Shown here piece after piece: positions 12,402 through 62,516 of a stretch of DNA of 64,000 bases. The position numbers and the translations under genes were made by a program. The stretch comes from Leucoraja erinacea. Its lineage: Eukaryota. The stretch lies in the NCBI RefSeq assembly GCF_028641065.1, contig NC_073387.1:15934001-15998000 (forward strand), written 5' to 3'. Within the stretch, counting starts at the first letter, position 1; each line of letters begins with the position of its first letter. Under the pieces are notes generated by a model. The model had not been told where the DNA came from, did not search any database, and saw only the letters and a program-made list of their open reading frames with translations.

Positions 12402-12674
12402 CTGAACAATCTAATGCAGCGACTGAGGGAGACAACGTTACCCTGACCTGCTCTGTGTCAAAGGTCACTAAGTCAATGAGACTTGTTTGCATCAATGGTG
12501 ATGGCAAAATAGTGGGAGAGAAAATTTCCAAGGAGCCAAGGCAGGAAGAGACATCTTTACAGCTGATCATTCCAAAAGCTGTTGCAGACAAAAGGAATCA
12601 TCGCTGCGGTTTGTTTCTTCAAAATACTCCCAAGGTTTTAATTCCATATGGTCTGAATGCATTGCAATCCAATG
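12402..12674 (+). CDS. Gene A exon: membrane-proximal C2-like Ig domain of an ITIM-bearing IgSF receptor
   Basis: Acceptor ttgtttcccag, donor g|gtaagt, phase 1/1; reads EQSNAATEGDNVTLTCSVS...SLQLII...NHRCGLF; paralogous to 51208-51468. Confidence 0.88.
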
Positions 12675-14229
12675 GTAAGTGTCTTGTCTTCTGCTGTTTG
12701 TAATTTCCACAGAAACGGAATATTATTTATTTCTTCTAACGTATCATATTTCATAACCCACTGCGGTTAGTATCTCTGGTAACTCCTGCCCACTCTGTGG
12801 AAGGGTCTGTGGATCCCACATTGTCATCAACAGTAACATCTGAATCCGCAAAACTGGAGAATTAAAAAAAAAACATTCTCAGGATATCACCCATTCCTTG
12901 GGCATTAAGTGTGTGGCGTAGTTACTCCTAGTATCCAATGACTGCCTCCTCAAGATCACAAATGGGATGAGAATTAATTTCAAAATTAGCTTTTGGACAT
13001 TTTTGTCCTGAAACAACAGAGGAGTTGTGTCATTATCATTGGGGCGATGGGTGTGTCCTATCACACACAGACATGAATTCAAGACAACGCTCAGACACAC
13101 AATGAGCACTGTTGCATTTGAGATATATTTTATCAAGCCCTTCCTCATGTCTCCATCTGCACTTTCATTCAATGGTTCAGAAGTCAAGTGAACTCAATAA
13201 ATATCCAACAATATTTAATGCTTTCTGCTTTAACACTTCTTCGGGAAAGCTTTGTTTTGCCGACCCTGCAGTTTCAATACACCAACACATGTAAAACTCT
13301 CCTGGAAACAGCAACTTTCTTCATGATGGTAACTGTGAGCTTTTCGTTGCTGTTTATTTTCTCCTGCAGAGCAGCAGTCTCCCTCTGGGTGAGGACAATA
13401 GGGCTCTGACTACAGTCGGCTGAGAGTCCACCGAGGAATGAAGACTTTGTTTGTGCTCTGCCTGTGCCTCAGTGACAGTAGAACCCTGCTCCAGCAGCCG
13501 CTGCACCAGGGGAGAGGCCACCCCCACACCCACTCCCACTGTTGTATCCCCAACCCTTTGATTGGAAACCTGTGCTCATGGCTCTACAGAAAGCCGTGCG
13601 GAAGGTTGGAGATGGGATCTCTGACAGTCCTTGACATCTCTTCCATGCTGTAAGGCAGAAAAACCTTCCCATGTACTCATCCTCATCACAGTTTCCATCA
13701 GACTCCTCTGGGGCAGATCTGAATTTGAACCCTGACCTCCAAGGAGTTGCTATACAAACCTCCCAATCCTTTGGTCTAACTACAGCCGACTGCTGCCCAG
13801 TCTGAAGTGTCCAGCAAGTGATGGAGCCTTAAACTACATGGGTTTGTGAACAGATTGGCAGGTGTGCAGCATTGATGAACTGGTCAACCTTACTAGAAGA
13901 AATGAAAGATTATGCACAAAAATGCACAGAAGAATTTTCTGCTGCATTGCAATAGAATAGCAATAGGTTGGTCTAGTTCTTGATCAAAAGAAAAATAAGT
14001 ACATCTGATTAAATATGAAATAAAATCAGAGAATGCTGGAAGCATTCATCAGGTCAGAAAGCATCTGTAGAAAGATGAATATAATGAAGGTTGCTGATTG
14101 AAAATGTTTTGTGAGAATCCGTCAAAGTATTTTCAGACAAAAAAAATAAATTTACACTACTTCAATCTGCACTACAATCTGTGCACCATTTTGCTATTTT
14201 GGGCATTCCTTGTAGGAATCCTTATAGCA

Positions 14230-15490
14230 TTTGTCACGCACACTGTCAAAAAGGCTTTCAGTACATTCGCCTTGATCAGTCAAAGGATTGTGTATAGAAG
14301 TTGGGATGTTATGTTACAGTGTACAAGATGTTGATGAGGCCGCACTTAGAATATTGTTCTCAGTTTTGGTCACCCTGCTATAGGAAAGATTTTGTTAAAC
14401 TGGAAGGAATCAGAAAAAATTCATGAGGACATTGCCAGCACCTGAGGGCCTGAGCTATAGGGAGAAGTTACCAGGCTTGGACATTATTCCGTGGACGGCA
14501 GGAAAGTGAGGAATGATATTATAAAGATGTTTAAGATTATATGGGGAATAAATGGGGTAAATGCACAGTCTTTTAACCAGAGTAAGGGAATTAAGCTGAG
14601 AAGGGAAAGATTAATAGGATATTGAGAGGCAACATTTTCACACAGAGGGAGCTGGGTATATACATTAATAGACATTAGCCAATAGGTGCAGGAGTAGGCC
14701 ATTCAGCCCTTTGAGCCAGCACTGCCATTCAATGTGATCATGGCTGATCATAGCCCATCAGTACCCCGTTCCTGCCTTCTCCCCATATTCCCCAACTCCG
14801 CTATCTTTAAGAGCCCTATCTTGCTCTCTCTTGAAAGTATCCAGAGAACCGGCCTCCACCGCCCTCTGAGGCAGAGAATTCCACAGACTCACAACTCTCT
14901 GTGAGAAAAAGTGTTTCCTCGTCTCCGTTCTAAATGGCTTACTCCTTATTCTTAAACTGTGACCTCTGGTTCCGGACTCCCCCAAAATCGGGAACATGTT
15001 TCCTGCCTCTAGCATGTCCAAACCCTTAACAACCTTCTATGTTTCAATAAGATCCCCTCTCATCCATCTAAATTCCAGAGTGTACAAGCCCAGCTGCTCC
15101 ATTCTCTCAGCATATGACAGTCCCGTCATCCCGGGGTTTAACCTTGTATTAGCTGCCAGAGGAGTTCGATGAGGCATGTATGATAACATTTAAAAGACAT
15201 TTTGGCAAGTGCATGGATAATGAAGGTTTAGAGCAGTGGTTCTTAACGTTTTTGGCAACAAATTGATATGTTATTTATGACCCCTTCATGACCCCTTGCA
15301 AAGCCCCAAATGAATGACACCCCCCCCCCCCCCCCCCCCCCACCCCCACAGGGGGTCATCACCCCCACGTTAAGAACCACTGGTTTAGAGGGATATGTGC
15401 CAAATGGGTCCAAGTAGGACTCGAGTGGATGGGGCAGCTTAGTTGTCATAGGCAAGTAACGGGGAAGATCCTGTTTCCCTGCAGTTTGAA
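14230..15490 (+). mobile_element. Old CR1 3' fragment interrupted by a younger minus-strand CR1 (14667-15150) and a MITE
   Basis: Degenerate RPHLEYC-like region at ~14335-14370; minus-strand ORF 14758-15021 is the CR1 C-terminus (TRGHSL, VVSLWNSLP). Confidence 0.75.
15234..15382. mobile_element. hAT (Charlie-like) MITE, 149 bp
   Basis: Perfect 16-bp TIR cagtggttcttaacgt / acgttaagaaccactg; 8-bp TSD gtttagag at 15226-15233 and 15383-15390. Confidence 0.9.
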
Positions 15491-15833
15491 TTTATCATTA
15501 TAGAACCCTTGGACAATGGGCAGCATCACAGCTGACTTGGATCGAGCTATCTGCACATATCTCACGCCAGACAGGGTCGCCGAATTGAAAGCAGGAACAA
15601 TAACCTGGTGTCATTTGTTTCCTGTTGTTAACTGATGGGTACTGAGGTCAGTTATAGCTCTCAGATCTTCCTGAGCGAGGTCTGTTAACCTGGATCAGGA
15701 AGTAAGTCCAGGACCTCTGGACTCTGCTGGTTAATTATAAACTAGACCACATGATTACAGCTGGAAGATTGGAAATGCTTTGGAATGATGGTTTAGAAAC
15801 TCAAAGTAATATCTGTGCTTATTCTTCTGACAG

Positions 15834-15941
15834 ATTTTTCCCCTTCAAAGGAAATTATTATTATTATTATTAGCATCGTGGCTTCTCTGCTCTTCATTAT
15901 CCTGACAGTGGTGGTGTGTTGGGGAATTCGTAAGTGGAGAG
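15834..15941 (+). CDS. Gene A transmembrane exon (uncharged TM)
   Basis: Acceptor ttcttctgacag, donor g|gtaagg, phase 1/1; DFSPSKEIIIIIISIVASLLFIILTVVVCWGIRKWR. Confidence 0.88.
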
Positions 15942-16000
15942 GTAAGGTGCAATTTTTTTCTCAATGTGCTGAAGAGAAAAGAACAGTTACTGGAATTAAA

Positions 16001-17947: not shown

Positions 17948-18013
17948 TCCCTGCAGAAACAGAAGAAGATATCCATTATGGATCTATCACCTTCCAGAAA
18001 AAAGCGGCAACAG
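17948..18013 (+). CDS. Gene A cytoplasmic exon 1, containing an ITIM
   Basis: Acceptor ttcttcatttcag, donor g|gtaaat, phase 1/1; VPAETEEDIHYGSITFQKKAAT (IxYxxI). Confidence 0.85.
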
Positions 18014-18422: not shown

Positions 18423-18466
18423 GGCGCCGTGATGGAAAATCACCCTCCAACCAAGAGATAGATATG
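18423..18466 (+). CDS. Gene A cytoplasmic exon 2 (44 nt)
   Basis: Acceptor caattatcacag, donor atg|gtcagt, phase 1 to 0; GRRDGKSPSNQEIDM; this exon is needed to put the final exon in the ITIM frame. Confidence 0.75.
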
Positions 18467-20279: not shown

Positions 20280-20280
<1 letters not shown>

Positions 20281-22292: not shown

Positions 22293-24297
22293 GAGGCCAA
22301 TGGATGCATTAGTGATAATTTTTCAAAACTCTTTAGATTCTGTAGTAGTTCCTGAGGATTGGAGGGTAGCTAATGTAACCCCACTTTTTAAAAAAGGGAG
22401 GGAGAGAGAAAACGGGGAATTACAGACCAGTTAATCTTAACATCGGTTGTGGCAGTCAGTTATTAAAGATGGGATAGCAGCACATTTGGAAAGTGGTGAA
22501 ATCATTGGACAAAATCTGCATGGATTTACGAAAGGTATATCATGTCTGACAAACCTTATAGAATTTTTCGAGGATGTAACTAGTAGAGTGGATAAGGGTG
22601 AACCAGTGGATGTGTTATATCTGGACTTTCAGAAAGCTTTCGACAAGGTGCCACATAAGAGATTAGTATACAAACTTAAAGCACACGGTATTGGGGGTCC
22701 AGTATTGATGTGGATAGAGAACTGGCTAGCAAACAGGAAGCAAAGAATAGGAGTAAACAGGTCCCTTTCAGAATGGCAGGGAGTAACTAGTGGGGTACCG
22801 CAAGGCTCAGTGCTGGGACCCCAGCTATTTACAATATATATTAATGATTTGGACGAGAGAATTGAATGCAACATCTCCAAGTTTGTGGATGACACAAAGC
22901 TGGGGGGCAGTGTTAGCTGTGCGGAGGATGCTAGGAGGCTGCAAGGTAACTTGGATAGGCTGGGTGAGTGGGCAAATGCATGGCAGATGCAGTATAATGT
23001 GGATAAATGTGAGGTTATCCACTTTGGTGGCAAAAACAGGAAAGTAGACTATTATCAAAATGGTGGCCGATTAGGAAATGGGGAGGTGCAACGAGACCTG
23101 GATGTCATGGTACACCAGTCATTGAAAGCAGGCGTGCAGGTGCAGCAGGCAGTGAAGAAAGCGAATGGTATGTTATCATTCATAGCAAATGGATTTGAAT
23201 ATAGGAGCAGGGAGTATAGGAGCATTTGTATAGCATATTGGTGAGACCACACCTGGAGTATTGTGTACAGTTTTGGTCTCTAAATCTGAGGAAAGACATT
23301 CTTGCCATAGAGGGAGTACAGAGAATGTTCACCAAACTGAGTCCTGGGATGTCTGGACTTTCATATAAAGAAAGACTGGATAGACTCGGCTTGTACTCGC
23401 TAGAATTTAGAAGATTGAGGGGGGATCTTATAGAAACTTACAAAATTCTTAAGGGGTTACAACTAAGTTACAACAACTAAGTTACAGAGATAGGTTGAAT
23501 AAGTTAGGTCTTTATTCTCTGGAGCGCAAAAGGTTAAGGGGGGACTTGATAGAGGTCTTTAAAATGATGAGAGGGATAGACAGAGTTGATGTGGACAAGC
23601 TTTTCCCTTTGAGAATAGGGAAGATTCAAGCAAGAGGACATGACTTCAGAATTAAGGGACAGAAGTTTAGGGGTAATATGAGGGGGAACTTCTTTACTCA
23701 GAGAGTGGTAGCGGTGTGGAATGAGCTTCCAGTGGAAGTGGTGGAGGCAGGTTCATTGGTATCATTTAAAAATAAATTGGATAGGCATATGGATGAGAAG
23801 GGAATGGAGGGTTATGGTATGAGTGCAGGCAGGTGGGATTAAGGGGGAAAAAAATTTGTTCGGCACGGACTTGTAGGGCCGAGATGGCCTGTTTCCGTGT
23901 TGTAATTGTTATATGGTTATATGGTTATATGGTTGGACAGGCTGGATGCAGGAAGATTGTTCCCGATGTTGGGGAAGTCCAGGACAAGGGGTCACAGTTT
24001 AAGGATAAAGGGGAAATCCTTTAGGACCGAGATGAGAAAAATATTTTTCACACAGAGAGTGGTGAATCTCTGGAACTCTCTGCCACAGAAGATAGTTGAG
24101 GCCAGTTCATTGGCTATATTTAAGAGGGAGTTAGATGTGGCCCTTGTGGCTAAAGGGATCAGGGGGTATGCAGAGAATGCAGGTTCAGGATACTGAGTTG
24201 GATGATCAGCCATGATCATATTGAATGTCGGTGCAGGCTCGAAGGGCCGAATGGCCTACTCCTGCACCTATTTTCTATGTTTCTATGTTTCTATGTC
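22293..24297 (+). mobile_element. 5'-truncated CR1 (subfamily B) with a different CR1 3' fragment nested at ~23459-23930
   Basis: RT ORF 22447-23244; the insert splits cttaagggg|ttggacagg and ends in (atatggtt)n; the outer element ends in (tttctatg)3. Confidence 0.9.
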
Positions 24298-27900: not shown

Positions 27901-28764
27901 TTACGTATTTGCTAGGGTAATCACTGGGAAGGGCATCAAACCCTCCCCATGGTGGATAAGCAGCGCTAAATCCAGCTCAACTCTTCCTGTTAACCCACCA
28001 GCCCTATCTGGACTTACGGAATGACAACACAGGTTTATTAATTACCATCCACAGGGCCCACGTGAAGCCTCCGAAGCCTCGCGTGTGTGTGAGTGTTCGC
28101 ATGCGCATGCGGCCGCCAAGACATTGTGTCCCCCCCCCCCCCCCCCCCCCCCCCCCTCGGTCCTCCGGTCCCCCCCATGTTTTGATAGCTATTTCCGTGC
28201 CTGGTGAATGACCAATATACTGTGCACTTCTTACCCAGGCACGTGCCGTGAGTAATTACTCAGGGTCTGCAGTCAGTCGGCTTTTAAAAAAATCTTAAAC
28301 TTTGCATGTGTAGATTGCTCACCTCTCCGTAAAAATAAAAAATAAAAATAAAGAAAGTAACAATTCAATTTGTCCAAGGCTTCCAAATTTCCTTCATTCT
28401 GAATGACTGAATAGGTGAGGGGTGGAGGGTGATGGCAGGTGGAGAGATGGTGAGAAAAACAGGAGCACACCGGGACAAGTTGAATCAGTTGTGATCTTAT
28501 TGAATGACAATACTAGTTCAAGGGACCTATTGGGGGGAGAGTTCCATGTGGGGAGTCTGGCCATGGGTAAAGTTGCGGGGAGGGCAGCAGTGTTGAGAAG
28601 AAAGGGGTCGGGGATCATGCCAGTAACCCACTCACTCACCGCTGCCATGGCGCTCCGGGCGCAGAGCCACCGCATTGTGGCAGGGAAGGGAAGTAGCTTG
28701 TGTGGCTGCGAGTGGCTGCCGAGACCTCAGCGCCTTCTGCTGATCGGCTCACCTCTGCCAGTCT

Positions 28765-28936
28765 CTCATACACTCACACTCATACATTCACACTCAAACT
28801 CACACTCACACATACACTCACACATACACTCACACATACACTTACACATACAATCACACCCTACACTCACACACACATATACACTCACATACACTCACAT
28901 ACAGTCACACACATACACACTCACACACACAGATAT

Positions 28937-28986
<50 letters not shown>

Positions 28987-46300: not shown

Positions 46301-46393
46301 TCTACCCTCATTTTACACCCCTCGGTCTCTACGCTCACACATTTAAGAAACCCTTTCCCATTAACTCCATCCTCCACTATCCCATTCGAAACC
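43356..46393 (-). mobile_element. CR1 (subfamily B) ORF2 with internal deletions
   Basis: ORFs 45595-46617, 44815-45471, 44321-44716 and 43456-44190 are nearly identical to 8000-11020; (catagaaa)3 tail. Confidence 0.93.
45467..45600 (+). mobile_element. 134-bp Penelope-type insertion with a hammerhead ribozyme core
   Basis: CTGAAGA-a-gggt-ttcg-gccc-GAAAC-GTT at 45472-45499; 16-bp TSD actgctaa(c/g)caaccct at 45451-45466 and 45601-45616. Confidence 0.8.
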
Positions 46394-46399
46394 TTATCT

Positions 46400-47298
46400 C
46401 GAGGAAACTTATCAAAGGCTTTCTGAAAGTCTAGATACACTACATCCACTGGCACCCCTTCATTCATTTTACTTGTCACATCCTCAAAATATTCCAGAAG
46501 ATTAGTCAAGCATGATTTCCCTTTCATAAAACCATGTTGACTTGGACTAATCCTTTTACTGCTATCCAAATGCCCCATTGTCACATCTTTAATAATTGAC
46601 TCTATCATCTTTCCCATTACCGGTCAGGCTAACTGGTCTGTAATTCCCCATTTTATCTCTCCTTTCTTGAAAAGTGGGATAACTTTGGATAGCTATCCTC
46701 CAATCCACAGGAACTGATCCTGAATCTATTGAACATTGGAAAATGATCACCAATGTGTCCACTATTGCTGGAGCCACCTTCCTGAGAACCCTAAGATGCA
46801 GACCATCAGGCCCAGGGGATTTATCATCTCTCAGTCCCATTAGCCTACCCAAAACTATTTCTCACCTAAATAAAATTTATTTCAGTTCCTCTACCCCCTT
46901 AGATCCTCAATCCTCCAGTACATCTGGGAGATTGTTTGTGACTTCCTTAGTGAAGACAGATCCGAAGTACCTGTTCAACTCTTCTGCCATTTCCTTGTTA
47001 CCCATAATAATTTCACCCATGTCTGCATTCAAGGGGCCCACATTTGACTTTGCTACTCTTTTTCCCCTTAACAAATCTAAAGAAGCTTTTTAATGTCCTT
47101 CTTTATACTCCTGGCCAGCTTCCCATCGTACTTCATCTTTTCAGCTCGTATTGCCTGTTTAGTTTCCTTCTGTTGTCCTATGAAAGTTTCCCAATCCTCT
47201 GGCTTCCGGCTACTCTTTGCTGTGTTATACATCTTTTCTTTTAGTTTTATTCTAACCCTAACTTCTCTTGTCAGCCACGGTTGCCTCCTACTCCTCTT
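46400..47298 (-). mobile_element. CR1 (subfamily A) internal ORF2 fragment
   Basis: Homologous to ~620-1500 (SSKRISPSQHGF, KSSRKPEDWETF). Confidence 0.88.
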
Positions 47299-48393
47299 AG
47301 TTGAAAAAAAAAACAGGAAGTAAAACAGCCCAGAGCTCAAAATAGACGCATTATTGTGGTTGAACTGGACAAAACCTCCTAATGCAGCCTTAACCATTGC
47401 TCTTAATTTTGCTTCCGGTCCTGAATGTGATATGGGGAAAGGCAAAATCCCTCATTTTTCTTGGGATCAGTCAAATCTATATTATCTTCTGAAGGAGCTT
47501 GGAAAACACAATAATGACACCTTGTGCCCTTCTAACCTCACATTTAAGAAAAAAAAATAATAATAAACTTTAGGCAGAATAAAAACCATTTACAAAACTA
47601 TTTTTTAAGAAAACGGTCCTGACCCAAAACATCACCTAGCCATGTTCTCTATGGATGCTGCCTGACATGCTGAGTTACTCCATTATTTTGTGTTTTTCCT
47701 TGGTAAGCCAGAATCTGTAGTTCCTTGTTTTATACAAATCTAAAACAACATAAAAACATCTTCAGACACTTCCAGTGTCCTTACATTCAATAGTATCATA
47801 CTCAATAGCATTAGCATTTATCTTTACAATTAAACACCCTTACCACTCATGTGGTGATATTCTTTCCCTAGTATGAGGGATGTTCCCACCAGACTAATCC
47901 CTCAATGTCCAGCAGGAGAAGGTCCCTAGACTGTGGTCCTTCCCCACAGAGTTTTTATGTTGGTTGCAACAAGCTTCTGTTCATCCCTCAGCACATTTTC
48001 CTGCAGTCTGTAGTGGGTCAGGTGGCAACATTCCATGATGGACCTCATTTTGACATATCAATGCTTCATTCCTCAGCACAGTAACAGTGTGTGGGAGATG
48101 GGGCAACGTTCCTGTCCTTATAATCCAGCCTTTGACCCACAGTGAGCAGCATCAGAACAGTAGAATTGCCATTGAAGTATTATCTTTAGAAACAAAAAAG
48201 ACACTTCCTCACTCTTACGTTCAATGGGCTTAGCATTGAAGGCAAGCATAACATAAGCCTTCTTCAGTACCCTAACTACTTGTGTTGCCACCTTCTGTGA
48301 GCTATGAACGTGGACTCCAAATGTACTGAAGATATGTGGCTCAAACAGGCTCAGTCTAAAACTTGATGTTATTTCCCACAGGGAATCCACAAG

Positions 48394-48481
48394 ATGAAGC
48401 CCAGGTTTATCTGCAGCAGTTTGCCAGGTGGTTTGATGTTCGGTTTCTTTGTTTTCCTGCTTCGACCTGTTTCCAACCAGA
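48394..48481 (+). CDS. Gene B first coding exon: signal peptide
   Basis: Upstream acceptor atttcccacag (48381), aagATGa start context, MKPRFICSSLPGGLMFGFFVFLLRPVSNQ, phase-1 donor a|gtaagt. Confidence 0.75.
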
Positions 48482-48854
48482 GTAAGTGCTTTCTCTTCAC
48501 CGGTCACAATCACGTTGCTTTACTTTATCATTGTCCGTGTAAATCCGCACCCCATTGTCAATCTCACTTTTTCAATTCAATTCAACTTTAATGTCATCGC
48601 ACAAATACAAGTATGACTACAACGAAATGCAGTTTTGCGCCAGTCCGTAGTAGTTGTGCATAAAGAAATAAAAAAAATAGAAAGAGAGAAGATACAGAAT
48701 AATCAAAAAATACAGAATAATTAAACAATGGGGACGGAGGGACCGGAGAAATCTATCGGCGGGACTCCGAGTTCAGTAATGTGATTGTATTGTTGTAGAA
48801 GCTGTTCCTCATCCTACTAGTACGTGACCTGAGGCTCCTGTACCGCCTCCCAGA

Positions 48855-49255
48855 AGGATGAGGGGGTTCTTATAGAAACATATAAAATTATAAAAGGACT
48901 GGACAGCTAGATGCAAGAAAAATGTTCCCAATTTAGGGCTACAGAACCAGGAGCCACAGTCTTAGAATAAAGGGGAGGTCATTTACGACTGAGGTGAGAA
49001 AAAACTTTTTCATCCAGAGAATTGTGAATTTGTGGAATTCCCTGTCACAGAGGGCAGTGGAGGCCAAATCACTGGATGGATTTAAGAGAGAGTTAGATAG
49101 AGCTCCAGAGGCTAGTGGAATCAAGGGATATGGGGAGAAGGCAGGCACGGATTATTGATTGGGGATGATCAGCCATGATGACAATGAATGGCGGTGCTGG
49201 TACGAAGGGGTGAATGGCCTCCTCCTGCACCTATGTTTCTATGTATCTATATTTC
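48855..49255 (+). mobile_element. CR1 (subfamily A) 3' fragment in a gene B intron
   Basis: Matches 11678-12040 and shows the uninterrupted DIRS target site. Confidence 0.85.
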
Positions 49256-49513
49256 TAAAAGCACACCAGCTCAAAGATGCAGAGATTGTAGTGTAGTCTG
49301 AAGTAATGCAAAATAAAACTAATGTTTATGAAAATGCCCCAGGGGATGATTGGTTTAACGTATGATGAGTGTTTGTGGCTCTGGGCTTGGACTAGCTGGA
49401 GTTTAGAAGAATGAGGGGCGGGTCTAGTTTGTCAGCTGAGGTGAGATTGAGCCCAGTCATTGGACTGTCCACACCACTACTCACTCTGAATCTCATTGAT
49501 CTGTTTTTCACAG

Positions 49514-49783
49514 TTGAGGCAAGTCCACAGCGCCCTCTGCTGGGCAGTGACGTCACACTCAGCTGCACCATCTCCAGACTCTCAGATACAGTCAGTCTTC
49601 ACTGGAGACCAATGGTTTCATCCCAGAAGAACACGAGCAACACTGATCAGACCCGCCTGAATAACACGGTCTATCTGATGATCCGACATGTTACAGTGGA
49701 GGATGGGAAGTTGTATGTGTGTGATGTGCAGGAAAACGGAAACATTGTTCTCACCAGTAATGGAGATTTTACTGTAAACAACA
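49514..49783 (+). CDS. Gene B Ig domain 1 (C2/I-like)
   Basis: Acceptor tgtttttcacag, donor a|gtgagt, phase 1/1; EASPQRPLLGSDVTLSC...SLHW...YLMIRHVTVEDGKLYVC. Confidence 0.9.
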
Positions 49784-50760
49784 GTGAGTGTAAACACCTC
49801 CCATTACATATCAAGTAGACACTTGTATCACGGTGCTTCTTGGAATGTTATGCGTGCGCCCTGTGAAGAACTGTAGACAAGCAACTGCTCTCCTGTATAA
49901 AATGCTGCAATGATCAGGGAGAATTTTCCAGAAAGTCTCTCTGTGGAGCAGCTGTCTGCTTGTCTCTGTGTGACAGACACACAACACAGGAGTGATGATG
50001 TATTTCTGTAACGTTCAGTAAAGTATTTTGTCAGTTTAACTTGCCATCAATGCTCCAGTATCTGAGACTGAGATACTGATACAGGACTCGCGTCAAAGTG
50101 TCAGATAGAAGGTGTAGTCACCATGACAACCACCAGCACTTGCTGCTCACACTCACACTGGGGGTCCCGGTGCACACATCAGCACTGAACAACAATCCGT
50201 ACTCCCTCCCCTCACTGACCCTTCTCTCCGAGTCCTGCTGCTGTTTGAAGTGATTCCAGCTGCTGCAGACTCGGGCTTCAGATCAGCATTGAGCTGGGAG
50301 CAGGACCCAGGAACAGGGAAGGGCAGGGAATCAATGGGTGTGAATGGGAGAGTGATGGTGGGAATAATGGTAATGAAGGGACGGGAAGACCCGACCCACT
50401 TGAACTGCCAACCTGTCCGGATCTGGCCCCGCGCAGGCATTCTCTGGGCTGCTGCTGTCACCAGCCTCGACCTGCACCACCTCCCGCAGACTGACAGAGA
50501 GATTCACCTCCCGGGCCGCTCTCGGGAGTCTCCGGGAGGGTTCATTCCATCATGGAAGATTCCTGGACCGTCTGTGAAATATCCAAGCTTTACTGCAATT
50601 TACTACTTTACAGGAAATTTTGTAAAGATCTGATGAGTTTTGATGTAAAATTAATTTACATTTGAAGCTTGATCAGCTGAACAAAACACTGCAAATATAT
50701 ATGAGAATTTAGTTGTAACTGTAATACTGAAATGAGTTATCCTCTGTCTCTCCGATACAG

Positions 50761-51129
50761 TTTTATTTAAAACGGAATACACAGTTTACCGCTCCAGTAC
50801 AGATCATAGTGAACTTCACCTGGTTTGCTATAACAGTCGTGGGGATTCCAATACTGCCATGACCTGGACATCACGTCGCCTTCAACAGCAACAACAGCAA
50901 GTATTAGCATCAGCAACACACTCTCAGCCCATCAATGTCAAAGGGGCCAACTTCGGGAATCGACTGGTGACGTCAGTGAAACATTTCGATGGCAAGGATT
51001 TCAGTTTGAGGATTGTCCCCGTTTTATTTCAAGATGCCGGATGTTACAAATGTTTTCTTGGAAAAGACACATCAGTGAACAACGCGGGAAGGTCTCCATT
51101 TCTCACCGTTGATCTAATCGCAGTGAAAG
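50761..51129 (+). CDS. Gene B Ig domain 2 (V-set)
   Basis: Acceptor ctctccgatacag, donor g|gtagga, phase 1/1; LHLVC...MTW...NRL...DFSLRI...DAGCYKC. Confidence 0.9.
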
Positions 51130-51207
51130 GTAGGAGACAGAATGCCGCCAGTGTTTTCACTGATGAACTCATTGTTTAAAATGTAAACAACCTGCTTGTT
51201 TCCACAG

Positions 51208-51468
51208 TCACAGCTGAACCGTCCGATGCAGTGACTGAGGGAGACAACGTTACCCTGACCTGCTCTGTGTCTCACGTCACTGAGTCAATGAGACTGATTT
51301 GGATCAATGGCGATGACAAAAGTGTTGGAGAAAAGACACTGACCGTGGAAGAGAAATCACTGAGTCTGGTTATTCAGAAAGTTGAGAGGGGCAGAGGGAA
51401 TTGGAGATGTGGTTTGTTTCATCAAGACCTGCTCCGGCATTTTGTCCCGTACTATCAGGAGCCCAGTG
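51208..51468 (+). CDS. Gene B Ig domain 3 (C2 with WxC F-strand motif)
   Basis: Acceptor ttgtttccacag (in-frame alternative 6 nt downstream), donor g|gtaagc; VTEGDNVTLTCSVS...LIWING...SLSLVI...GNWRCGLF. Confidence 0.9.
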
Positions 51469-51624
51469 GTAAGCGACTCAGGGTTTGCTCTTCATACTTA
51501 GAATTATGGTCACATTTTGACGTGACTTATTATTGTCCTATTTGCCAGCACTCACTCCTCCTTTATAGCCTGTGTGGGACACTGCTGTGGTGCAGTGCCT
51601 GGGAATATGGACAGTGGGATAACT

Positions 51625-51809
51625 CACTGGAAACCAAGAGGCTCATCTCAGTAGAACAGGAGGAACAATTGATCAGATCCATCTGATTAACACCATCTAT
51701 CTGATGGTCCAACATGTTGGAGCAGGAAATCCCAATCTGTACACATGGGAAGTGCAGGAAAATGGCTCCATTGTTCTCACTGGAGACACCAATGTTGAAG
51801 TGGATCAGG
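51625..51809 (+). pseudogene. Decayed duplicate of the gene B domain-1 exon (pseudo-exon)
   Basis: HWKPRGSSQ*NRRNN / DQIHLINTIYLMVQHV...LYTWEVQENGSIVLT aligns to 49600-49783; TAG at 51652, +1 frameshift, Cys to Trp; donor g|gtgagt retained. Confidence 0.85.
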
Positions 51810-54649
51810 GTGAGTCCAAAGCTGCCTTGCAGCAGGTATTAAATAGTTCCTGATATCAAACTGTTCCACATATTGTACAGTGAGCACTGTCTCCACCGTG
51901 GGCTTTCACTGCAGGATGTGGGCATTGCCTTTAACCTGGGACATGGTGTAATTATAAAATGTTGGCACTAAGATTGATGGAGCCACACAGGAGAACCAAG
52001 GTATACATTTAATTGTGTTTGCATGAATCAAAGGGGATAAAATCCATCAATAGAGAGAAGCAAGTAGTCTTCTGTCTAGAATGGAGGAGGCAAATAAAAG
52101 TTAATTAAAGATAGAAGTACAGCTGTTCTGAGATTTGGGTCTTTTCTGAGCCATTCACATGGGTCAAGTGTTGTTCTTCACTCACTCCAGTGATCTGTCA
52201 TTTTACTTCAGAGTCACGTGAGTGACTATATGAAGAACCCTGTTCAGCCGCACGTGCGTCATTATGTCAGACGCATTGGTGCAGGTGCCCGGTTGGAGCA
52301 GCAGAGCTCCTCCAGCGGGTAAGTTTAAAACACCTCGAGGTAAGTGGAAATCTTAGTCTTGAGGTCGCTTTCTGTGCCGGTGGTTGGTTTTTTGAGTTTG
52401 ACGATGCAGAAAGCAAGTAAGGTGAAGGGGAGGCGACCCATGGCGAAAAGTGTGGAGGACCGCGGGAATGCGGTTAGCAGGTGCCCGCCTAGTTCACCGA
52501 CTTTGTCGCAAGCAGGGGATCTTGCGACTGCAGACTCGTTGCCTGGGAGCAGCTTTGCCGCGTCGGTAGGGTGTAAGGCCACATTCAAGTCTGCCAGACC
52601 TATAGATCCAGAGTCGGGCCAGGAGGTTTAACATCCAGGAGAGTCCGTTTGCTCACAGCTCTCACAAATCAAGCACCTAATGGAGAGGTTGCTCGAGAAG
52701 GACCCACTCCGGGAGGAGGAGTGTAGTTCTTGCCAAGCTGTTGGAGAGCCTGTGCCAGCAGCGCCTGTAGTAGGGCTACATAATCGCCCCCTTCTGGAGG
52801 AGGAGGGTATGCTGGGTCAGGATTATGCTGATGCCGAGGTAATGGTTGCACATAGCCCAAAGGGTGAAGGGCAAGAGGTCTTTTTGGCTGCTAAGTTTGC
52901 AATCCCCAAAGAAGCAGGGGAGCCATTGGAGGAGGAGTTGGCTACTATAATCAATTATATGCTCACCCATCAGCTCCAGGAGCTGACAATGGATGATACG
53001 GCTAAAAAAATATGAAACCCCAGTTAACTGTGGGTTGTTGAAGGTGCTGGTGGTTAACCATGTGATATGGGGCCAAATGGGGGTTGCAGTGAGAACACAA
53101 GAATTGAAGGTCCAGAGGGTGCTTAAATTGCTAGCAGCAGGTAACACTACATTCGCCAGATCGGTGGACGAGGGACACATGACTGAAGTTCACCAGGATG
53201 CTCTGGGGCTTTTGTGCAGTGCACATTTTGAAATGAACTGCCTTAGAAAGAGTGCCATACGCCCCGCCATTCACCCAAAATTTGCAGCCCCATAATGTTC
53301 AGTTACCAAATCTGTTGTTTGGGGAGGACCTCGCAAAGCGAGTCAAAGAACTGGATGAAGAGACCTCATCAAAGTGCCAATAAGCAGCAGAATGGGCAAA
53401 AGGTTTTTCCCCTATCGACGGGATGCTATCACAGAAACTGGTGAAGGGGCGAGTCGTTCTTTCTCAAACACACAAGCCTGGTATCCTGCCACAGGCACAA
53501 GGGCAAAGATGAATTTCCCTACGAGGGGCCGGGGCAACAAGCTCAGTCAGGAAATGTGCAGGTAAGAGACTTTGCTCCTGAAGGAAATAAATTAAGTGGG
53601 GAAGATGTTCAAGTTGGGGGCAGGTTACACTTGTTTCTCAAAGAATGGCAGGAGATAACATCTGATCTATTTGTTTTGGGCAGTATAGAGGGGTTTCGAA
53701 TTGAATTCTGCCCTACTGTGTGTCCGCCCACTTAGCATGTCCCACGTCGGACTCTCGTGTTTTCACACAAAGAGAATATACAGATACAGGCAGAGCTTGG
53801 GATATTGTGCAAAAAAGAGGTTATTGAGAAATTGGTTCGTCAATCCCATCAGTTTGTGTCAAGTATTTTTCCTAGGTCTAAAACGGATGGGGGATGAAGG
53901 ATGGAGAATCATTCTGGACCTGACGAGCCTGATCCCTTTTGTGCAGTGTAGACATTTCAAAATGGAAACTTTTTCGACTGCTAATCAGATGGTTTCCAAA
54001 GGGTGTTATATGGCAAGCATAGATCTCAAGGATGCTTATTACACAATGTCTGTTCATTGTGATGATAGGAGATATTTGAAATTTAGCTGGATGAGTCAAT
54101 TGTGGCAATTCAAAGCACTGCCTAATGCGTTAACCTCAGATCCGAGATTGTTTACCAAATTGTAAAAACCAATGATTGGCTTACTCCGAACTCAGGGTCA
54201 TGTGGTAATGGCCTATTTGGATGATATTTTTATTGTAGGGCACACTCGAGAGGCAGCTGAATCATCTGTGTCAGTTGTTAAACTCACTTTTGAGCAGTTG
54301 GGGGTTCATTATCCATCCAGATAAATCCAAATTAACACCAGTTAAAGTTATTGATTACTTGGGCATCACCATTAACTCAGATCACATGTTAGTGACTATG
54401 CCGAGTGATAAAAAGCAGCAGTAAATTGAAGAATGTGTCAAGCTTTTTGAGGAACAACTACCCTCAATTAGACAGGTGGCCAAGTTGATTGGCAAGCTGG
54501 TGGCTGTTTTTCCAGCAGTACAGTTTGGGCCTCTGCATTATCAACAATTACAATGAGCAAAAGATCAAGCATTGGGAGCACATGCTGGCCATTTTGACAG
54601 GCCTATGAAGTTGCCAACAGAAGCCATTTCTGAGATACAATGGTGGATC

Positions 54650-56335
54650 TTCTAAAAGTCTAAAATGGAGGAGTATCGCAACGTGCACTGGTCTAGACAC
54701 CTTATCTCCCTCGGACCCTTTGGAATTTAACTCAAGGACACTCTTTGTTCAAAATGAAGGAAAGACTGATTTAACAACGGAGAGACGAACAGGAGAGCCG
54801 AACGTGGAAAACATCACAAGGACAAATGGCGGTTTAAGATCTTAAAATCGTTTTACAAAACACAGAGAATTAATAATAATTAACAACACTAATATAGAAA
54901 TAGAAATGGAAACTAACCAGAACTATATAATGGGGCAAAATGTAATAATGTGTTAAAAAGACAGACTATCCAGTATATAGAGCGAGACAGTTAAGCAGAG
55001 ATAAAGAAATAACAAATAACAAATTTTAGAACTAACGTAGACAATATCATAAGTTTTAGTGCTATGTACTTTGTGTGGGGAAGGGAGGAGACTCAGGCAT
55101 CTGGCATAGTTCCAGGAGCCTGATTCTGGTTAACCCTTTCAGCCGACAACTGACTATTATCAAAGGTATAACTAACTATAAATAGTTAGTAGATAAAAGT
55201 GTTAGATATATAAGTTTCACAGTAGCTGAACATACGATTTGATAAGTCTTAATGAAATATATATATATAGTGCAATTGGGTGAAATACAACTGATTTTGA
55301 AAGGTCCCGCCCTCCTAGGCTAAGAGTAATAAAGGGAGCGGAGCCCAAGCAATCAATTGTATAACATCAACATTGGAAGTCGAATTGATGTCAAACCCCA
55401 CAGTGTGTGGGACACTCATTACAGTGTCGACTACTCTAGACACTGTAATTTCACTTGTTCAATTTTTTTTAAATCACAATATGTCACAACTATGTGTTTC
55501 TTTTTTTAAGGACAATCGTAAAAGGGATCTAACAAAGGAAGTCAATAACATAAACGTTCCCCAAATATCCAGAGTCCTGACGTATGGATGCACCATAATA
55601 ATTAAGGGTATTAAAATCAGCGAAAATGCATGACGATAAACTAAAGAAAATGGGAGGAATCGCATTCTGCAGCTAGAACATAAGGGGTATTAATGAACCA
55701 ATCAAAAGGGGCAAGATAATAGCTCAGTTGAAATCATACAACACGGACATTACTTTTTTACAAGAAACGCATCTTAAACACCAAGATCAGATCAGGTTGA
55801 GGGCGAATTGGATAGGCCAAACATATCACTCTTCACACACCTCGAAATCCAGAGGTACCGCAATTATTATTCGCAAAGGAATACCATTTAAATCTAAGAA
55901 CATTATATCAGATAAGGAAGGGAGATATCTTATAGTTACAGGAAGATCTATGCTACGCCAATCACCTTGGTAAATATATACGCGCCCAATTTTGATAATC
56001 CTCAATTTTTCAATAAAATCTTGAATACAATCGCAGAGTTCAACTACCAAAATGTTATAATTGGAGGAGACTTCAACTGTGTTTTAGACCCATACTTAGA
56101 TAAATCGATGCAAAAACAAAGAGGTATTATGAAATCTAAAACTAGTGAACTCTTAAATACATACACAAAAAATACAAAAATAACAGACGTTTGGAGGATC
56201 GCGAATCCGACTGGAAGGGAATACTCGTTTTATTCAATGGTACACAAAACATACGTATAGATTATTTCCTAGTGGATACAAAACTAATCCCTTATACTAT
56301 GAACCCTAAATATCACACCAATACAATTTCAGATC
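54650..56335 (+). mobile_element. Internal L1-clade fragment (upstream spacer + ORF2 APE endonuclease) inside the second DIRS
   Basis: NIRGINEPIKR, FLQETHL, SDKEGRY, NIYAPN, GGDFN, DVWR, IDYFL. Confidence 0.82.
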
Positions 56336-57608
56336 CCTTCTGCGATTATGAGGGATCAATTATTTAGAGCTTCTGGGAACATTTTATGGGCTTAAAGCTT
56401 ATTGTTTTACCAAAAGTCAGGTGCATGTGCAGGTTCAAATTGACAACACTGCTGCAGTAGCATATCTGAATCATATGGGTGGTGTCAAGTTGAAAGCTTG
56501 TGATAGGTTGGCTAATCAGATCTGGAGCTGGTGTATTGACAGAAACATTTGGATTTCAGCAATCCATTTACCTAGTAGATTCAACATAGTCGCAGACACA
56601 AGGTCACGAAAATTCAATGACAACATAGAATGGAAGTTGAACCATGATATATTTGAAAGTGTTGTTGCTCGCTTTGGGATGCCAGATATCAATTTGTTTG
56701 CATCCAGACTAAACCACCAGTTGCCTAAATACATTTCATGGTAACCAGTTCCTGGGGCAGCAGCGGTTGATGCATTCTCGCTGCACTGGGGTGGAATGTT
56801 TTAATATGTATTTCCTCCATTCTGCCTCGTCAGTCGATGCCTGCAAAATATCAAGCAGGACTCCGCTTCAGGAGTATTGGTGGTACCCAACAGGCCTACT
56901 CAGCCATGGTATGCTCATGTTTTGGAGGTGGCTACTGAGCCTCACATGATTGTTCTAAAACACAAAAACCTAATAGTGAATCCTGTAACTGGTGATCAGC
57001 ATCCTTTACATGATCGTATTGATCTGTTAATTTGCAAATTCTAAGGAGACCATACCTGGGGAGAGGACTATCCAAGCGCACCATGGATATTATCACTGCA
57101 GTCTGGAGGGATAGTACCCAAAAGCAGTACATCTCTTCGATAAGAAAGTGGGACGTGTTCTGTTTATGGCAGAATATTTCATATCAAAATGCAGACATCC
57201 CAGATATGCTAGAGTTTTTGTCAACACTTTATTTCGATCAAAAGTTAAGCTATAGTGCGATCAAAACAGCCAGAAATGCTCTGTCTTCATATTTACCCAT
57301 GGTGTCAGAATTACATGCAGTGGGGACACATTCATTAGTCTCTAGATTCATGAAGGGAGTTTTTAATTCCCATCCTCCGAAGCCCAGGTATTCGGTTATC
57401 TGGAATATGAGCGAAGTTCTAATGCTGCTTCGCCAGTGGGCTCCTGTCACAGACCTATCTCTAGCCAAACTCACCATGAAGGTGGTCATGCTTTTGGCAT
57501 TGGTATCAGCCCAACGTGTGCAGACATTACAGATGCTGCGGCTAGACAGGATGGAGATATCAGCAGATGCCATCACTTTTTATGTTTATGATCGGCTCAA
57601 GCAGAGTA

Positions 57609-58332
57609 ATTGATACAAATACATCGATAGATGCTTCTGAACACATCATCAGTGGTGTAACCTGGGGTCAATGGGTGTTTCGGGTCTTTCAACATCAGAC
57701 ACCCTCACCCAGGTGACCCAGCCATGGTTGATCAGACCACGACTTGTGTTCAGGTGGCATTCGCTCCTTCCCATGGACCTCCTCTCCTGATCCAGAGCCA
57801 TCTCGAGGCCTTCTCCGCTACCTCTGTGGTGTTCTTGATGGCCTTTCTCCTTGCCACTCCGTTTATGCCTGGTGCACTGAAGGCTTTGTAGAGTGATTGC
57901 CCTGCAAAACCTCTGCAGCCAACCTCGATGGGCATACACCTTGCCTTCTAGCCCTGCTTGTGGCAGTCTATGACCAACTCTTCATACTTGGCCATCTTCC
58001 TCTTGTGGGCCTCTTCCAAACGGTCCTCCCATGGCACTGTCAGTTCCAACAAGACGATGCTTTTGGTCGCCTCTGAGACCAGGAGGATATCTGGCCGCAG
58101 GGTGGTCATGGCAAAGTGCCGTGGGAACTTCAGCTGTTTCACCAGGTCTACGGAAAGCTGCCAGTCCTGCGCAGTCGCCAGGATACCTGACTGATTCCTG
58201 GCTGCTGTGGTTCTTGGCAGCTGCACTCCAGCCTTCACGAAGGTGATCATCTGGGTGGTGGGGCGTTCTCGTCTACAGCTGCTGATTCCCATGCTGATGG
58301 CTTCTGCAATGGGTTTAAGAACCTGGTCGTGA
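57609..58332 (-). mobile_element. 5'-truncated HERO-like non-LTR retrotransposon (restriction-like endonuclease domain + 3' UTR)
   Basis: TTLRPDILL...LELTVPWE...KMAKY...PIEVGCRGF...ASRWLW; 7-bp TSD cagagta at 57602-57608 and 58333-58339; the DIRS YR frame resumes afterwards (DSRLCVV). Confidence 0.82.
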
Positions 58333-58767
58333 CAGAGTAGAATAGGGGTGACTGGGTTTAACATTATCTTTTCTGCATACTCCAAGGACTCCCGCCTGTG
58401 TGTAGTGTCATGTTTGTCTCAGTACATTGAGGCTACCAGAACCTTGAGGAGAACATTGTTCATTAGCCACAAAAATGCACAGTAAGGTGTCGGTGCAAAC
58501 TATCTCAAGGTGGCTAAAGCAGGTTCTGGTAAGCGCTGGGACACTGCTTCACTGGGGGTATGTTTCTCACATAGAAACATCAAAAATAGGTGCAGGAGTA
58601 GGCCATTTGGCCCTTCGTACCAGCACCATCATTCAATATGATCACGGCTGATCTTCCAAAATCAGTACCCTGTTAAGCTTTTACCCCATATCCCTCGATT
58701 CCCTTTGCCCTAAAAGCTGAATCTCGTGAAACCTCACAACTCACTGGGTAATGGATAGGACAGCTTT

Positions 58768-60775
58768 GAAACATAGAAACATAGAAAATAGGTGCAGGAG
58801 TAGGCCATTTGGCCCTTCGAGCCTGCACCGCCATTCAATATGATCATGGCTGATCATCCAAATCAGTATCCTGTACCTGCCTTCTCTCCATGCCCCCTGA
58901 TCCCTTTAGCCCCAAGGGCCACATCGAACTCCCTCTTAAATATAGCCAATGAACTGGCCTCAACTACCTTCTGTGGCAGAGAATTCCAGAAATTCACCAC
59001 TCTCTGTGTGAAAAATGTTTTCCTAATCTCGGTCGTAAAATATTTCCCCCTTATCCTTAAGCTGTGACCCCTTGTCCTGGACTTCCCTAACATCGGGAAC
59101 AATCTTCCTGCATCTAGCCTGTCCAATCCCTTAAGAATTTTGTAAGTTTCTATAAGATCCCCCCTCAATCTTCTAAATTCTAGCGAGCACAAACAAAGTC
59201 TATCCAGTCTTTCTTCATATGAAAGTCCTGACATCCCAGGAATCAGTTTGGTGAATCTTCTCTGTGCTCCCTCTATGGCAAGAATGTCTTTCCTCAGAAT
59301 AGGAGACCAAAACTGTACACAATACTCCAGGTGTGGTCTCACCAAGACCCTGTACAACTGCAGTAGAACCTCCCTGCTCCTATACTCAAATCCTTTTGCT
59401 ATGAATACTAACATACCATTCACCTTCCTCACTGCCTGCTGCACCTGCATGCCTACTTTTAATGATTGGTGTACCATGACACCCAGGTCTCGTTGCATCT
59501 CCCCTTTTCCTAATCGGCCACCATTCAGATAATAGTCTACTTTCCTGTTTTTGCCACCAAAGTGGATAACCTCACATTTATCCACATTATACTGCATCTG
59601 CCATGCATTTTCCCATTCACCCATCCTATCCATGTCACCGTGCAGCCTCCTAGCATCCTCCTCACAGCTAACACTGCTCCCCAGCTTCATGTCATCCGCA
59701 AACTTGGAGATGTTGCATTCAATTCCCTCGTCCAAATCATTAATATATATCGTAAATAGCTGGGGTCCTAGCACTGAGCCTTGCAGTACCCCACTAGTCA
59801 CTGCCTGCCATTGTGAAAAGGACCCGTTTAGTCCTACTCTTTTCTTCCTGTCTGCCAGCCAGTTCTCTATCCACATCAATACTGAACCCCCAATACCGTG
59901 TCCTATAAGTTTGTATACAAATCTCTTTTGTGGGACCTTGTCGAAAGCCTTCTGAAAGTCCAGATATAACACATCCACTGGTTCTCCCTTATCCATTCTA
60001 CTAGTTACATCCTCGAAAAATTCTATAAGATTCGTCAAATGATTTACCTTTCATAAATCCATGCTGACTTTGTCCAATGATTTCACCACATTCCTAAAGG
60101 TGCTGCAATCCCATCTTTAATAACTGATTCTAGCAGTTTCCCCACTACCGACGTTAGACTAACTGGTCTGTAATTCCCCATTTTCTCTCTCCCTCCCTTT
60201 TTAAAAAGTGGGGTTACATTAGCTACCCTCCAATCCTCAGGAACTACTCCAGAATCTAAAGAGTTTTGAAAAATTATCACTAATGCATCCACTATTTCTA
60301 GGGCTACTTCCTTAAGTACTCTGGGATGCAGCCTATCTGGACCTGGGGATTTATCAGCCCTTAATCCATTCAATTTACCTAACACCACTTCCCGGCTAAC
60401 CTGGATTTCACTCAGTTCCTCCATCTCATTTGCCCCGGTCCCCTGCTATTTCCAGCAGATTATTTATGTCTTCCTTAGTGAAGACAGAACCAAAGTAGTT
60501 TTTCAATTGGTCTGCCATGTCCTTGTTCCCCATGATTAATTCACCTGTTTCTGACTGCAAGGGACCTACATTTGTGTTAACTAATCTTTTTCTCTTCACA
60601 TATCTATAAAAACTCTTGCAGTCAGTTTTTAATGCTCCCTGCCAGTTTTCTTTCATAATCTATTTTCCCTTTCCTAATTAAGCCCGTTGTCCTCCTCTGC
60701 TGGTCTCTGAATTTCTCCCAGTCCTCCAACAGGCTGCTTTTTCTGGCTAATTTGTATGCTTCATCTTTTGTTTTG
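58768..60775 (-). mobile_element. 5'-truncated CR1 (subfamily B); another CR1 3' UTR piece at ~58570-58720
   Basis: 391-aa RT ORF 58863-60038; (catagaaa)n tail. Confidence 0.93.
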
Positions 60776-61315
60776 ATTTGGAGAGATTTGGACCAAATGC
60801 AAGCAGGTGTGACTAGTGTAGTCGGGACATGTTGGCCACAATGGGCAAGTTGGTCCAAAGGGCTTGTTTCCACTCTGTATCACTCCATTGGCTCTAATAG
60901 CTTCTCAGGCAATATGGCCAAGAGTGAGAATTCAGAGCCTGTAAAGTTTCAGCTGTGAATCTGTACCCAGTCCCTCTTGTGCAGACTCTGCAGTGTACAC
61001 CTAGTTGACATCAGTTTAGATAACGGATCAACCAATTTTGTGTACATTCTGACACATCTCATTCACCCAAAAAATATTCACAATGTTCCAAAAGTAATGA
61101 AGCAGAAAATATCAAAGCAAAGTCTCGGATGTTATGGATGAAACATAAAAGGTACCCAAGATTGGCACAATTATTTCTCACTCTTGACACAATATTTCTC
61201 ACTGTGTCCCACTGTCTAATGCAGAATGTTTATGATGTTACATCACAGATAGGAGTATTTAATTATGAAACAAGATGGAATATGAAACTGAAAATCTCAA
61301 CTTTGTCCTTCACAG

Positions 61316-61404
61316 ACATTAGGATCATCACAGTCCTTGGCTACTTGTCGATTAAACTGGCCGTTGCTCTTGGACTAATTTGCTGCTCGTGGAGGATGAA
61401 CCGG
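61316..61404 (+). CDS. Gene B transmembrane exon with an intramembrane lysine
   Basis: Acceptor ctttgtccttcacag, donor cgg|gtgaga, phase 1 to 0; DIRIITVLGYLSIKLAVALGLICCSWRMNR. Confidence 0.8.
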
Positions 61405-62408
61405 GTGAGAATTTCATGAGCTTTTCAATATATCAGAAACCAATGGCGTTGAAAAAATGGATGTTCACAGAACATATTAGAATGGTGACAATCTGTATTT
61501 TAGTGTTTGGCATTGAACAGTGCAACACAGAAATACATGATTTAAACTTATTCCTTTTGCCTGCTCTTGATCCAAATGTCTCCATTCTCAGCATATTAAT
61601 TAGCCAATCTAAAATCCTCTTAAACGCCACTATCATAACTATTTCTACCACAAACCTTCGATAAACTTCATAAAGGTTAAATGTGTGTTATTTGCTCTAT
61701 CTCAGGCTGCATCCTGGTCAACCTCTTCTGCGTTTTATCCAAAGCCTTCCCGTCCTTCCTTTAATGGGGCTACTAGAACTCCTAATGTGAATAATCAAAG
61801 TTTTTTTAAACATGCAGCATGACTTCCCAACTCCTATTCTCAATGGCCCAACCGATGAAGGCAAGCATACTTTGTGCATTCTTTACCATTTTATCTACTT
61901 GTGTTGTTACATTCAGAGAGCTATGGACATGAACCTTTAAACTTTTTCTATCCATTTACTTGTCCAATGTTTTTTAAATGCTGTTACAGAATCTTCCTCA
62001 GCTATCTCCTCTGGCAGCTCATTCCAGAAACCTATCACCATCTGATTGAAAAAATTGCCCCTCAGGTTCCTATTAAATCTTTCACCTCTCATTTTGAACC
62101 CATGTCCTCTGATTCTTGATACCCCAACCCGGGTAAAGACTTTGTTCATTCACATATCTATTCCTTTCTACAATCTAAACTTGTAATTTTGTAAGATATC
62201 AAATATGAAAGAACACTTTATCAACACAAATTGGAAAAAAATTCCACATTCAATATTCACGATGATATTGGTGTGTTTTTAGTTGAATTAAATGACCATG
62301 AAAATGTTTCTAACTTGGTCTGCAACCTCTTACCTATCACTTCCAGTCTATTGTTTATTATTGTTTATCTTTATTTAAAAGCATATTTGTTTCTCTTGTT
62401 TGATACAG

Positions 62409-62516
62409 AGCAGCAGATATTCACAGGAATTTCCAGGAAACACCACAAATAATTCAAGAGCTGTCGCATTGCAGACCCTGAATTCTGACCCTGATCTGAG
62501 AGATCAGAATGAATGA
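62409..62516 (+). CDS. Gene B terminal cytoplasmic exon (no ITIM or ITAM)
   Basis: Long pyrimidine tract and tgatacag acceptor, phase 0; SSRYSQEFPGNTTNNSRAVALQTLNSDPDLRDQNE*. Confidence 0.65.
   Translation, partial: SSRYSQEFPGNTTNNSRAVALQTLNSDPDLRDQNE

Follow-up and report, generated by a model that had tools for sequence, protein, structure and literature searches.

A candidate paired immunoglobulin-receptor family in the little skate, with inhibitory-type and activating-type genes side by side

Does a transposon-rich stretch of the little skate (Leucoraja erinacea) genome hold members of a paired receptor family, in which related extracellular domains are joined either to an inhibitory tail or to an activating transmembrane (TM) segment? 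The stretch, hereafter the window, comprises 64,000 nucleotides (NCBI RefSeq assembly GCF_028641065.1, contig NC_073387.1, positions 15,934,001 to 15,998,000 of the forward strand), and a preliminary description made from its letters alone had proposed two such genes, here called gene A and gene B. Our analysis indicates, with a probability of about 0.75, that two genes fall in the window, one of them with its 3′ end only and the other complete, and that both encode paired activating/inhibitory type I receptors of the immunoglobulin (Ig) superfamily. What was observed directly comprises the exons with their phases, the homology, and two signalling modules that are conserved and that interleave. 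Little is known about germline receptors that regulate natural killer (NK)-like or myeloid cells in cartilaginous fish, which are the most ancient animals to possess antibodies and a T-cell system, and the family to which genes A and B belong offers a concrete candidate, with both signalling types conserved across sharks, skates, rays and sawfish.

Two neighbouring genes of opposite sign

The coding exons of the two models are listed below in window positions, with the reading phases at their borders; ITIM stands for immunoreceptor tyrosine-based inhibitory motif.

Gene A
12402-12674, + strand: membrane-proximal Ig C2 exon, domain 8 of LOC129701496; AG/GT borders; phase 1-1
15834-15941, + strand: TM exon with the uncharged span IIIIIISIVASLLFIILTVVV; phase 1-1
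17948-18013, + strand: cytoplasmic exon 1 with ITIM 1 (EDIHYGSITF); phase 1-1
18423-18466, + strand: cytoplasmic exon 2, RRDGKSPSNQEIDM; phase 1-0; 94% identical to P0115 and P0002
18598-18666, + strand: last coding exon with ITIM 2 (SVIYAGI) and stop codon; 95% identical to the C-terminus of P0115
Gene B
48394-48481, + strand: exon with start codon and signal peptide; phase 1 at its end
49514-49783, + strand: Ig exon of family type D2 (I/C2-like, YVC motif); phase 1-1
50761-51129, + strand: V-set exon of family type D3; phase 1-1; Pfam V-set match above cut-off (E 1.3e-07)
51208-51468, + strand: membrane-proximal C2 exon of family type D4; phase 1-1; NWRC (WxC) motif
61316-61404, + strand: TM exon with a central Lys (GYLSIKLAV); phase 1-0
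62409-62516, + strand: exon of the short tail, containing the stop codon and the conserved LQTLNSDPDL stretch

AG and GT borders were found for all eleven exon models, and their phases match. The preliminary description had reported GT-AG junctions with compatible phases, paralogous C2 exons at 12402-12674 and 51208-51468, an uncharged TM with two ITIM motifs in gene A, and a TM Lys with an ITIM-free tail in gene B; each exon of both models was rechecked, and all of these features were confirmed. Its exon models called for two amendments: the gene A exons hold, with the TM exon now ending at 15941, and the six gene B exons hold, but the first domain of the family is missing from the gene. Of the two tandem genes it described, the neighbours are indeed of opposite sign, but gene A lies only partly in the window, which holds the last of its eight Ig domains.

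The phase 1 translation of exon 12402-12674 is a 90-residue Ig domain, for which Pfam returned Ig_3/Ig_2 matches below its cut-off. It is 100% identical to residues 752-842 of P0090, the 851-residue product of little skate LOC129701496, and the last 100 residues of P0090 equal window 12401-12700 at 100%, including nine residues read into the intron. This match agrees with the cartilaginous-fish host that had been deduced from the letters alone, and it identifies the exon, by identity of the predicted protein, as the eighth Ig domain of the eight-domain gene LOC129701496. The seven other Ig exons lie upstream of base 1, and debris of long interspersed nuclear elements (LINEs) within the last large intron of gene A makes up the window's first 12 kb. 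In this eighth domain (D8) a Cys stands in place of the core Ig Trp (RLVCING), and a His occupies the Trp position of the WxC motif (NHRC). The same Trp-to-Cys change is present in the second D4 of Rhinoraja P0077 (RLVCMNG), and it therefore looks like a conserved feature of a domain type rather than decay.

Downstream of D8, the gene A model draws its support from the Amblyraja radiata protein P0115, which has a matching D8, the same TM (compared by eye) and the same three tail pieces, with 94–95% identity on three exons by tblastn; because of this match we regard the ITIM-tail model, including its three tiny exons, as supported. Exon 17948-18013 also drew tblastn matches from P0002, P0035 and P0033, and its ITIM 1 motif is kept in sharks and rays. 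The predicted tail carries two canonical ITIMs, IHYGSI and VIYAGI, whose tyrosines are 39 residues apart, and its tyrosine contexts read YGSIT, YLASS and YAGIA. The six-isoleucine run that opens the TM is encoded by an (ATT)6 microsatellite at 15852-15869; the Amblyraja ortholog has seven isoleucines.

The leader of gene B is 74–78% identical to those of P0078, P0077 and P0081, and its D2 exon 75–80% identical to Rhinoraja P0078 and P0024. The D4 exon, whose phase 1 translation is an 86-residue Ig domain, matched 22 proteins, mostly from skates at 82–92% identity. The TM exon encodes 30 residues (IRIITVLGYLSIKLAVALGLICC) with the Lys at position 14, and is 91–97% identical to the TM of P0005, P0014 and P0015; a search with it for transcript-derived proteins gave a single match. 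The 35-residue tail contains neither an ITIM nor an immunoreceptor tyrosine-based activation motif (ITAM). No exact model of gene B was present among the fetched proteins, the nearest being Amblyraja P0001 (92–94%), and no D1 exon or remnant was found within the window down to E 50.

Between the D4 and TM exons of gene B lies a further, decayed exon.

about 51569-51810, + strand: decayed exon of the family's domain-6 type, in pieces in three frames with two stops; AG at 51567-51568

This relic, LYTWEVQENGSIVLTGDTNVEVDQ, is a variant of domain 6 without the second cysteine, and it stands 100 bases 3′ of the D4 exon. An intact form of the Cys-less domain 6 is kept in eight-domain members from skates to mantas.

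Exons 12402-12674 and 51208-51468 share 57% amino-acid identity (tblastn E 1e-24), and their first 122 nucleotides are 85% identical. Exons were searched singly, by reference, and not as joined spliced proteins. Genes A and B lie on the same strand, 30 kb apart, with an assembly gap between them.

29073-29285, strand not applicable: assembly gap within a CA-rich simple repeat (about 28744-29470) present on both flanks

The gap begins 10.4 kb after the gene A stop codon and ends 19.1 kb before the gene B ATG, and the exons and introns of both models lie clear of it; the tandem placement of the two genes across it rests on the scaffold. Because they are only 57% alike in the domain they share, genes A and B are adjacent members of opposite sign and not each other's counterpart.

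A multigene family with two signalling modules

Full-length members of the family have a conserved leader followed by four Ig domains: D1 (V-like, without cysteines), D2 (I/C2-like, YxC), D3 (V-set) and D4 (C2, WxC). In some members the D1-D4 set occurs twice, giving eight domains, or an extra D4 is present, so that 3-, 4-, 5- and 8-domain forms exist. There are dozens of copies per skate genome, and clustering is evident from LOC numbers that follow one another on a skate record of 60.4 Mb and on an Amblyraja record of 66 Mb.

The two signalling modules were counted in 163 fetched proteins, with the TM-Lys motif scored as GYLxxKL and three chance matches taken out. The TM-Lys motif occurred in 31 proteins, the ITIM tail (IHYGS/VIYAQ) in 29, and both together in none. 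Each module recurs next to a membrane-proximal C2 domain of the same kind, in predicted proteins that represent at least 10 elasmobranch genera. Models in which D4 leads into the TM-Lys exon with its LQTLNSDPDL tail come from Amblyraja, Leucoraja, Rhinoraja, Pristis, Pristiophorus and Cetorhinus, and likewise from Scyliorhinus, Heptranchias, Hypanus, Hemitrygon and Mobula. Over a range that begins with sixgill-type and saw sharks and extends to skates and mantas, this exon is almost unchanged, and the short LQTLNSDPDL tail follows it in many species.

A tree of the membrane-proximal domain (60 rows) required 16 changes between activating and inhibitory labels, against approximately 20 for shuffled labels, and at least 6 of the 16 were forced by well-supported branches. 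The underlying alignment has 89 columns and many forks are open, so that interleaving alone is the firm result. Sister pairs of opposite sign with near-identical D4 were found within species in Rhinoraja, Pristiophorus, Cetorhinus and Scyliorhinus. Such interleaving of activating and inhibitory labels is, as far as the sequences go, the pattern of paired receptor families, and the family has the further marks of one: related ectodomains, members with ITIMs, members with a basic TM and a short tail, and gene clusters. The contrast between genes A and B that had first been read as a paired-receptor signature is thus reinforced by module conservation, by the 31/29/0 census, by the interleaved tree and by the within-species sister pairs.

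The V domain of gene B has few relatives. A search with it against 1.84 billion representatives gave just 58 matches at E<=0.001. A profile search gave 98, of which the strong ones came from sharks, skates, rays, sawfish and elephant shark. Outside this group, proteins of the eel (Anguilla) follow the family colinearly through all four domains (BLASTP E 6e-42, 28% identity), with WxC in D4 and a TM with Lys. The family is therefore older than the split between cartilaginous and bony fish, or at least common to both. The Anguilla proteins P0027 and P0044 are built as long arrays of D1-D2-D3(-D4) units; a Lys lies in the TM (GMLKVL), and the tail is short. An ITIM form was absent from these two eel proteins, which were the ones read.

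The preliminary description had recognised no named family, and the databases agree. The labels of all 98 profile matches are limited to 'uncharacterized', 'hypothetical' and 'CD276 antigen homolog', with 'VCAM1-like' occurring once, and labels such as 'CD276 homolog' are borrowed and not family assignments. Pfam, single-exon sequence searches against solved structures, and the protein atlas returned generic Ig families, matches and clusters only, and in the limited body of literature searched we found no described family of this kind in cartilaginous fish. Genes A and B would therefore belong to a multigene family without a name of its own, so far as we could find.

In the mechanism that we propose by analogy with known paired receptors, gene A would act as the inhibitory module, with its uncharged TM and two-ITIM tail, and the ITIMs, once phosphorylated, would recruit SH2 phosphatases. 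Gene B would act as the activating module, with a central TM Lys and a short, motif-poor tail; the partner of this Lys would be the Asp in the TM of an ITAM adaptor, for example DAP12. The cells expressing these receptors are presumably leukocytes, as in known paired receptor systems. From the same analogy we infer an innate immune role with SHP-1/2 and DAP12 as partners, and it likewise guides what we say of expression, ligand and cell type. The Lys-bearing TM is kept almost letter for letter across elasmobranch groups, and the eel homologs also have a TM Lys. In practical terms, the locus provides exact exons, junctions and motifs for work on skate immune tissue.

Likeness to known receptors

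An AlphaFold model of one four-domain family member, based on 48 sequences (mean pLDDT, the predicted local distance difference test score, of 81), has four Ig domains, and in it long strands pass unbroken across the D1-D2 and D3-D4 boundaries. Foldseek placed LAG-3 and CD4 in its top ranks. In a second structural comparison four-domain CD4 took the top four places (Z 15.6–17.8), with the next match at 13.9. A search of 48,161 representative chains that did not use Foldseek returned D3-D4 of rat CD4 first (Z 15.7, a root-mean-square deviation of 2.7 Å over 170/177 residues), followed by LAG-3 D3-D4 (Z 13.3, 22% identity). A weak colinear profile match to LAG-3 D3-D4 was also obtained (E 1e-4). 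A WxC motif in D4 is very unusual and typical of CD4/LAG-3 (PMC10768021). Given the fold matches and the WxC in D4, CD4/LAG-3 is the closest of the known architectures.

The likeness consists of the V-C2-V-C2 four-domain ectodomain, common to full-length family members (gene B itself lacks D1), and of the WxC in strand F of D4 (NWRC in the family). The differences are considerable: sequence identity is just 12–22%, the family's D1 has no cysteines, its members carry canonical ITIMs or a TM Lys with a short tail, and it is a multigene family with 3-, 4-, 5- and 8-domain forms. CD4 has WxC in both D2 and D4 (PMC10768021), whereas the family has YxC (LYVC) in D2. CD4 or LAG-3 proper, a candidate raised by the WxC motif and the tandem order, was ruled out by tails without the defining motifs and by the many copies. 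The likeness offers a testable route into the origin of that opposing pair.

Mammalian paired Ig receptors (KIR, LILR, SIRP, CD300 and Siglec-5/14) likewise place related ectodomains on either an ITIM tail or a short tail with a basic TM, and they resemble the family in gene clustering and in the repeated evolutionary exchange of both types. They differ from it in domain types and layout, with no detectable specific sequence relation. The VTYAQL motif of KIR, LILR and LAIR resembles the second ITIM of the family, V-I-Y-A-Q/G-I/V. The teleost families NITR, DICP and LITR are also lineage-expanded multigene Ig receptors with inhibitory and charged-TM activating members. None of the three was among the family's sequence matches; by structure NITR alone was comparable, and of it NITR11 alone appeared, as a single-domain match. 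CD276 (B7-H3), whose name NCBI lends to some members, shows weak local profile similarity across the V-to-C junction (E 1e-6), but it has neither an ITIM tail nor a TM Lys, and was not among the top structural matches.

Alternative explanations and surrounding sequence

Several observations weigh against the view that both genes encode working paired receptors. The NCBI model of gene A reads through past 12674, ends in the intron there and has neither TM nor tail. Genes A and B share only 57% in their common domain and differ in size (8 versus 3 Ig domains), and gene B, with the order leader-D2-D3-D4, lacks D1. The decayed exon after the gene B D4 keeps an AG acceptor (51567-51568) that could compete with the distant TM exon, and the model of Amblyraja P0001, the likely gene B ortholog, ends inside it at the same stop. 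If P0001 is indeed the ortholog, the shared stop means that the decay probably happened before the two skates diverged. Four RNA runs of the same species label, tissues not recorded, were compared with 48300-52000. Depth on gene B exons ranged from <1 to ~4.5 reads, and no exon-exon junction reads were found over that span, outside which the 9.8-kb junction 51468>61316 lies. The read orientation fits RNA of the + strand. Reads on D4 differ from the window at two fixed positions, and because of such fixed differences those on D4 and the decayed exon come from an allele or a paralog. Together with the skate paralog model P0107, which reads through its D4 donor, the missing D1, the spare acceptor, the end of P0001 and the near-absence of RNA on gene B exons would suit a different explanation, namely that gene B is a decaying copy, or yields only a soluble or truncated product by D4 read-through or by splicing to the decayed exon, leaving the TM-Lys exon unused. 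We consider this unlikely, since all six coding exons of gene B are open with consensus borders and matching phases, and the TM exon is 91–97% identical to TM exons used in other models; in addition, the tissues behind the four RNA runs are not on record, and automatic models often end by read-through if the next exon is distant.

Two further explanations assign the family elsewhere. The structural matches raise the prospect that its members are CD4/LAG-3-type co-receptors or adhesion molecules that bind class II molecules of the major histocompatibility complex (MHC) or similar ligands on T-lineage cells, a role for which the V-C2-V-C2 layout, the continuous D1-D2 and D3-D4 strands and the D4 WxC all speak; between them, CD4 and LAG-3 also make up an activating/inhibitory pair (PMC10768021). 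Yet neither the Cx(C/H) Lck-binding motif of CD4 nor the (F/Y)xxL(D/E) tail motif of LAG-3 (PMC10768021) occurs in the tail of gene A or gene B, D2 has YxC instead of WxC, copies number dozens per genome instead of one, and a basic TM residue is the mark of adaptor-coupled receptors. Shark CD4 and LAG-3, moreover, have already been identified as other genes (PMC10768021), and we regard the co-receptor role as distinctly unlikely. The other explanation would make the family known biology, identical with the modular domain immune-type receptors (MDIR) of the clearnose skate, a name that would then be missing from the database labels. MDIRs, in work by Cannon et al. from 2006, are reportedly a large multigene family of the skate, in which Ig domains of four subfamilies occur in numbers from one to six; a charged TM is said to be present in one form, and ITIMs in others, a description that resembles ours in host group, modularity, multigene character and the presence of both charged-TM and ITIM forms. 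MDIRs are, however, described as structurally similar to CD300/TREM/pIgR, and the CD300 V domain has a YWCR motif and two disulfides (PMC3031540), whereas WC[RK] was found in 0/48 family members, with at most one Cys pair per domain. No CD300, TREM or pIgR chain stood in the top 50 structural matches, and no clearnose-skate or MDIR-named protein in the 98 profile matches or the 30 clusters opened. These indirect tests, made on the hallmarks that later authors describe, speak against identity, which we judge very improbable.

We thus continue to read genes A and B as paired activating/inhibitory receptors. One extension of this reading, which is tentative and on balance doubtful, is that this family, of all living ones, stands nearest to the stock that gave rise to CD4 and LAG-3. 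If that were true, CD4 and LAG-3 would be survivors of an old multigene family of paired receptors with a V-C2-V-C2 rod, and the shark, skate and eel members might have kept their binding to MHC class II-like ligands while serving as receptors of NK or myeloid type.

Introns and intergenic space in the window are filled with LINE copies that contain endonuclease and reverse-transcriptase domains, at 6955-10355, 22441-23241, 43459-47450 (- strand) and 58866-60450 (- strand). The copy at 6955-7980 has an open reading frame 1 (ORF1) with a GDSL-type esterase domain. Further retroelement pieces lie at 52300-58400 and 3000-4200 (- strand), and the phage-integrase SAM-like domain among them, at 57023-57610, suggests DIRS-like tyrosine-recombinase elements within the 9.8-kb intron of gene B. 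Transposon fragments at 48548-49415, in gene B intron 1, take nearly all of the RNA reads, on both strands and in all four runs; most of these reads fit only partly and therefore come from copies elsewhere in the genome.

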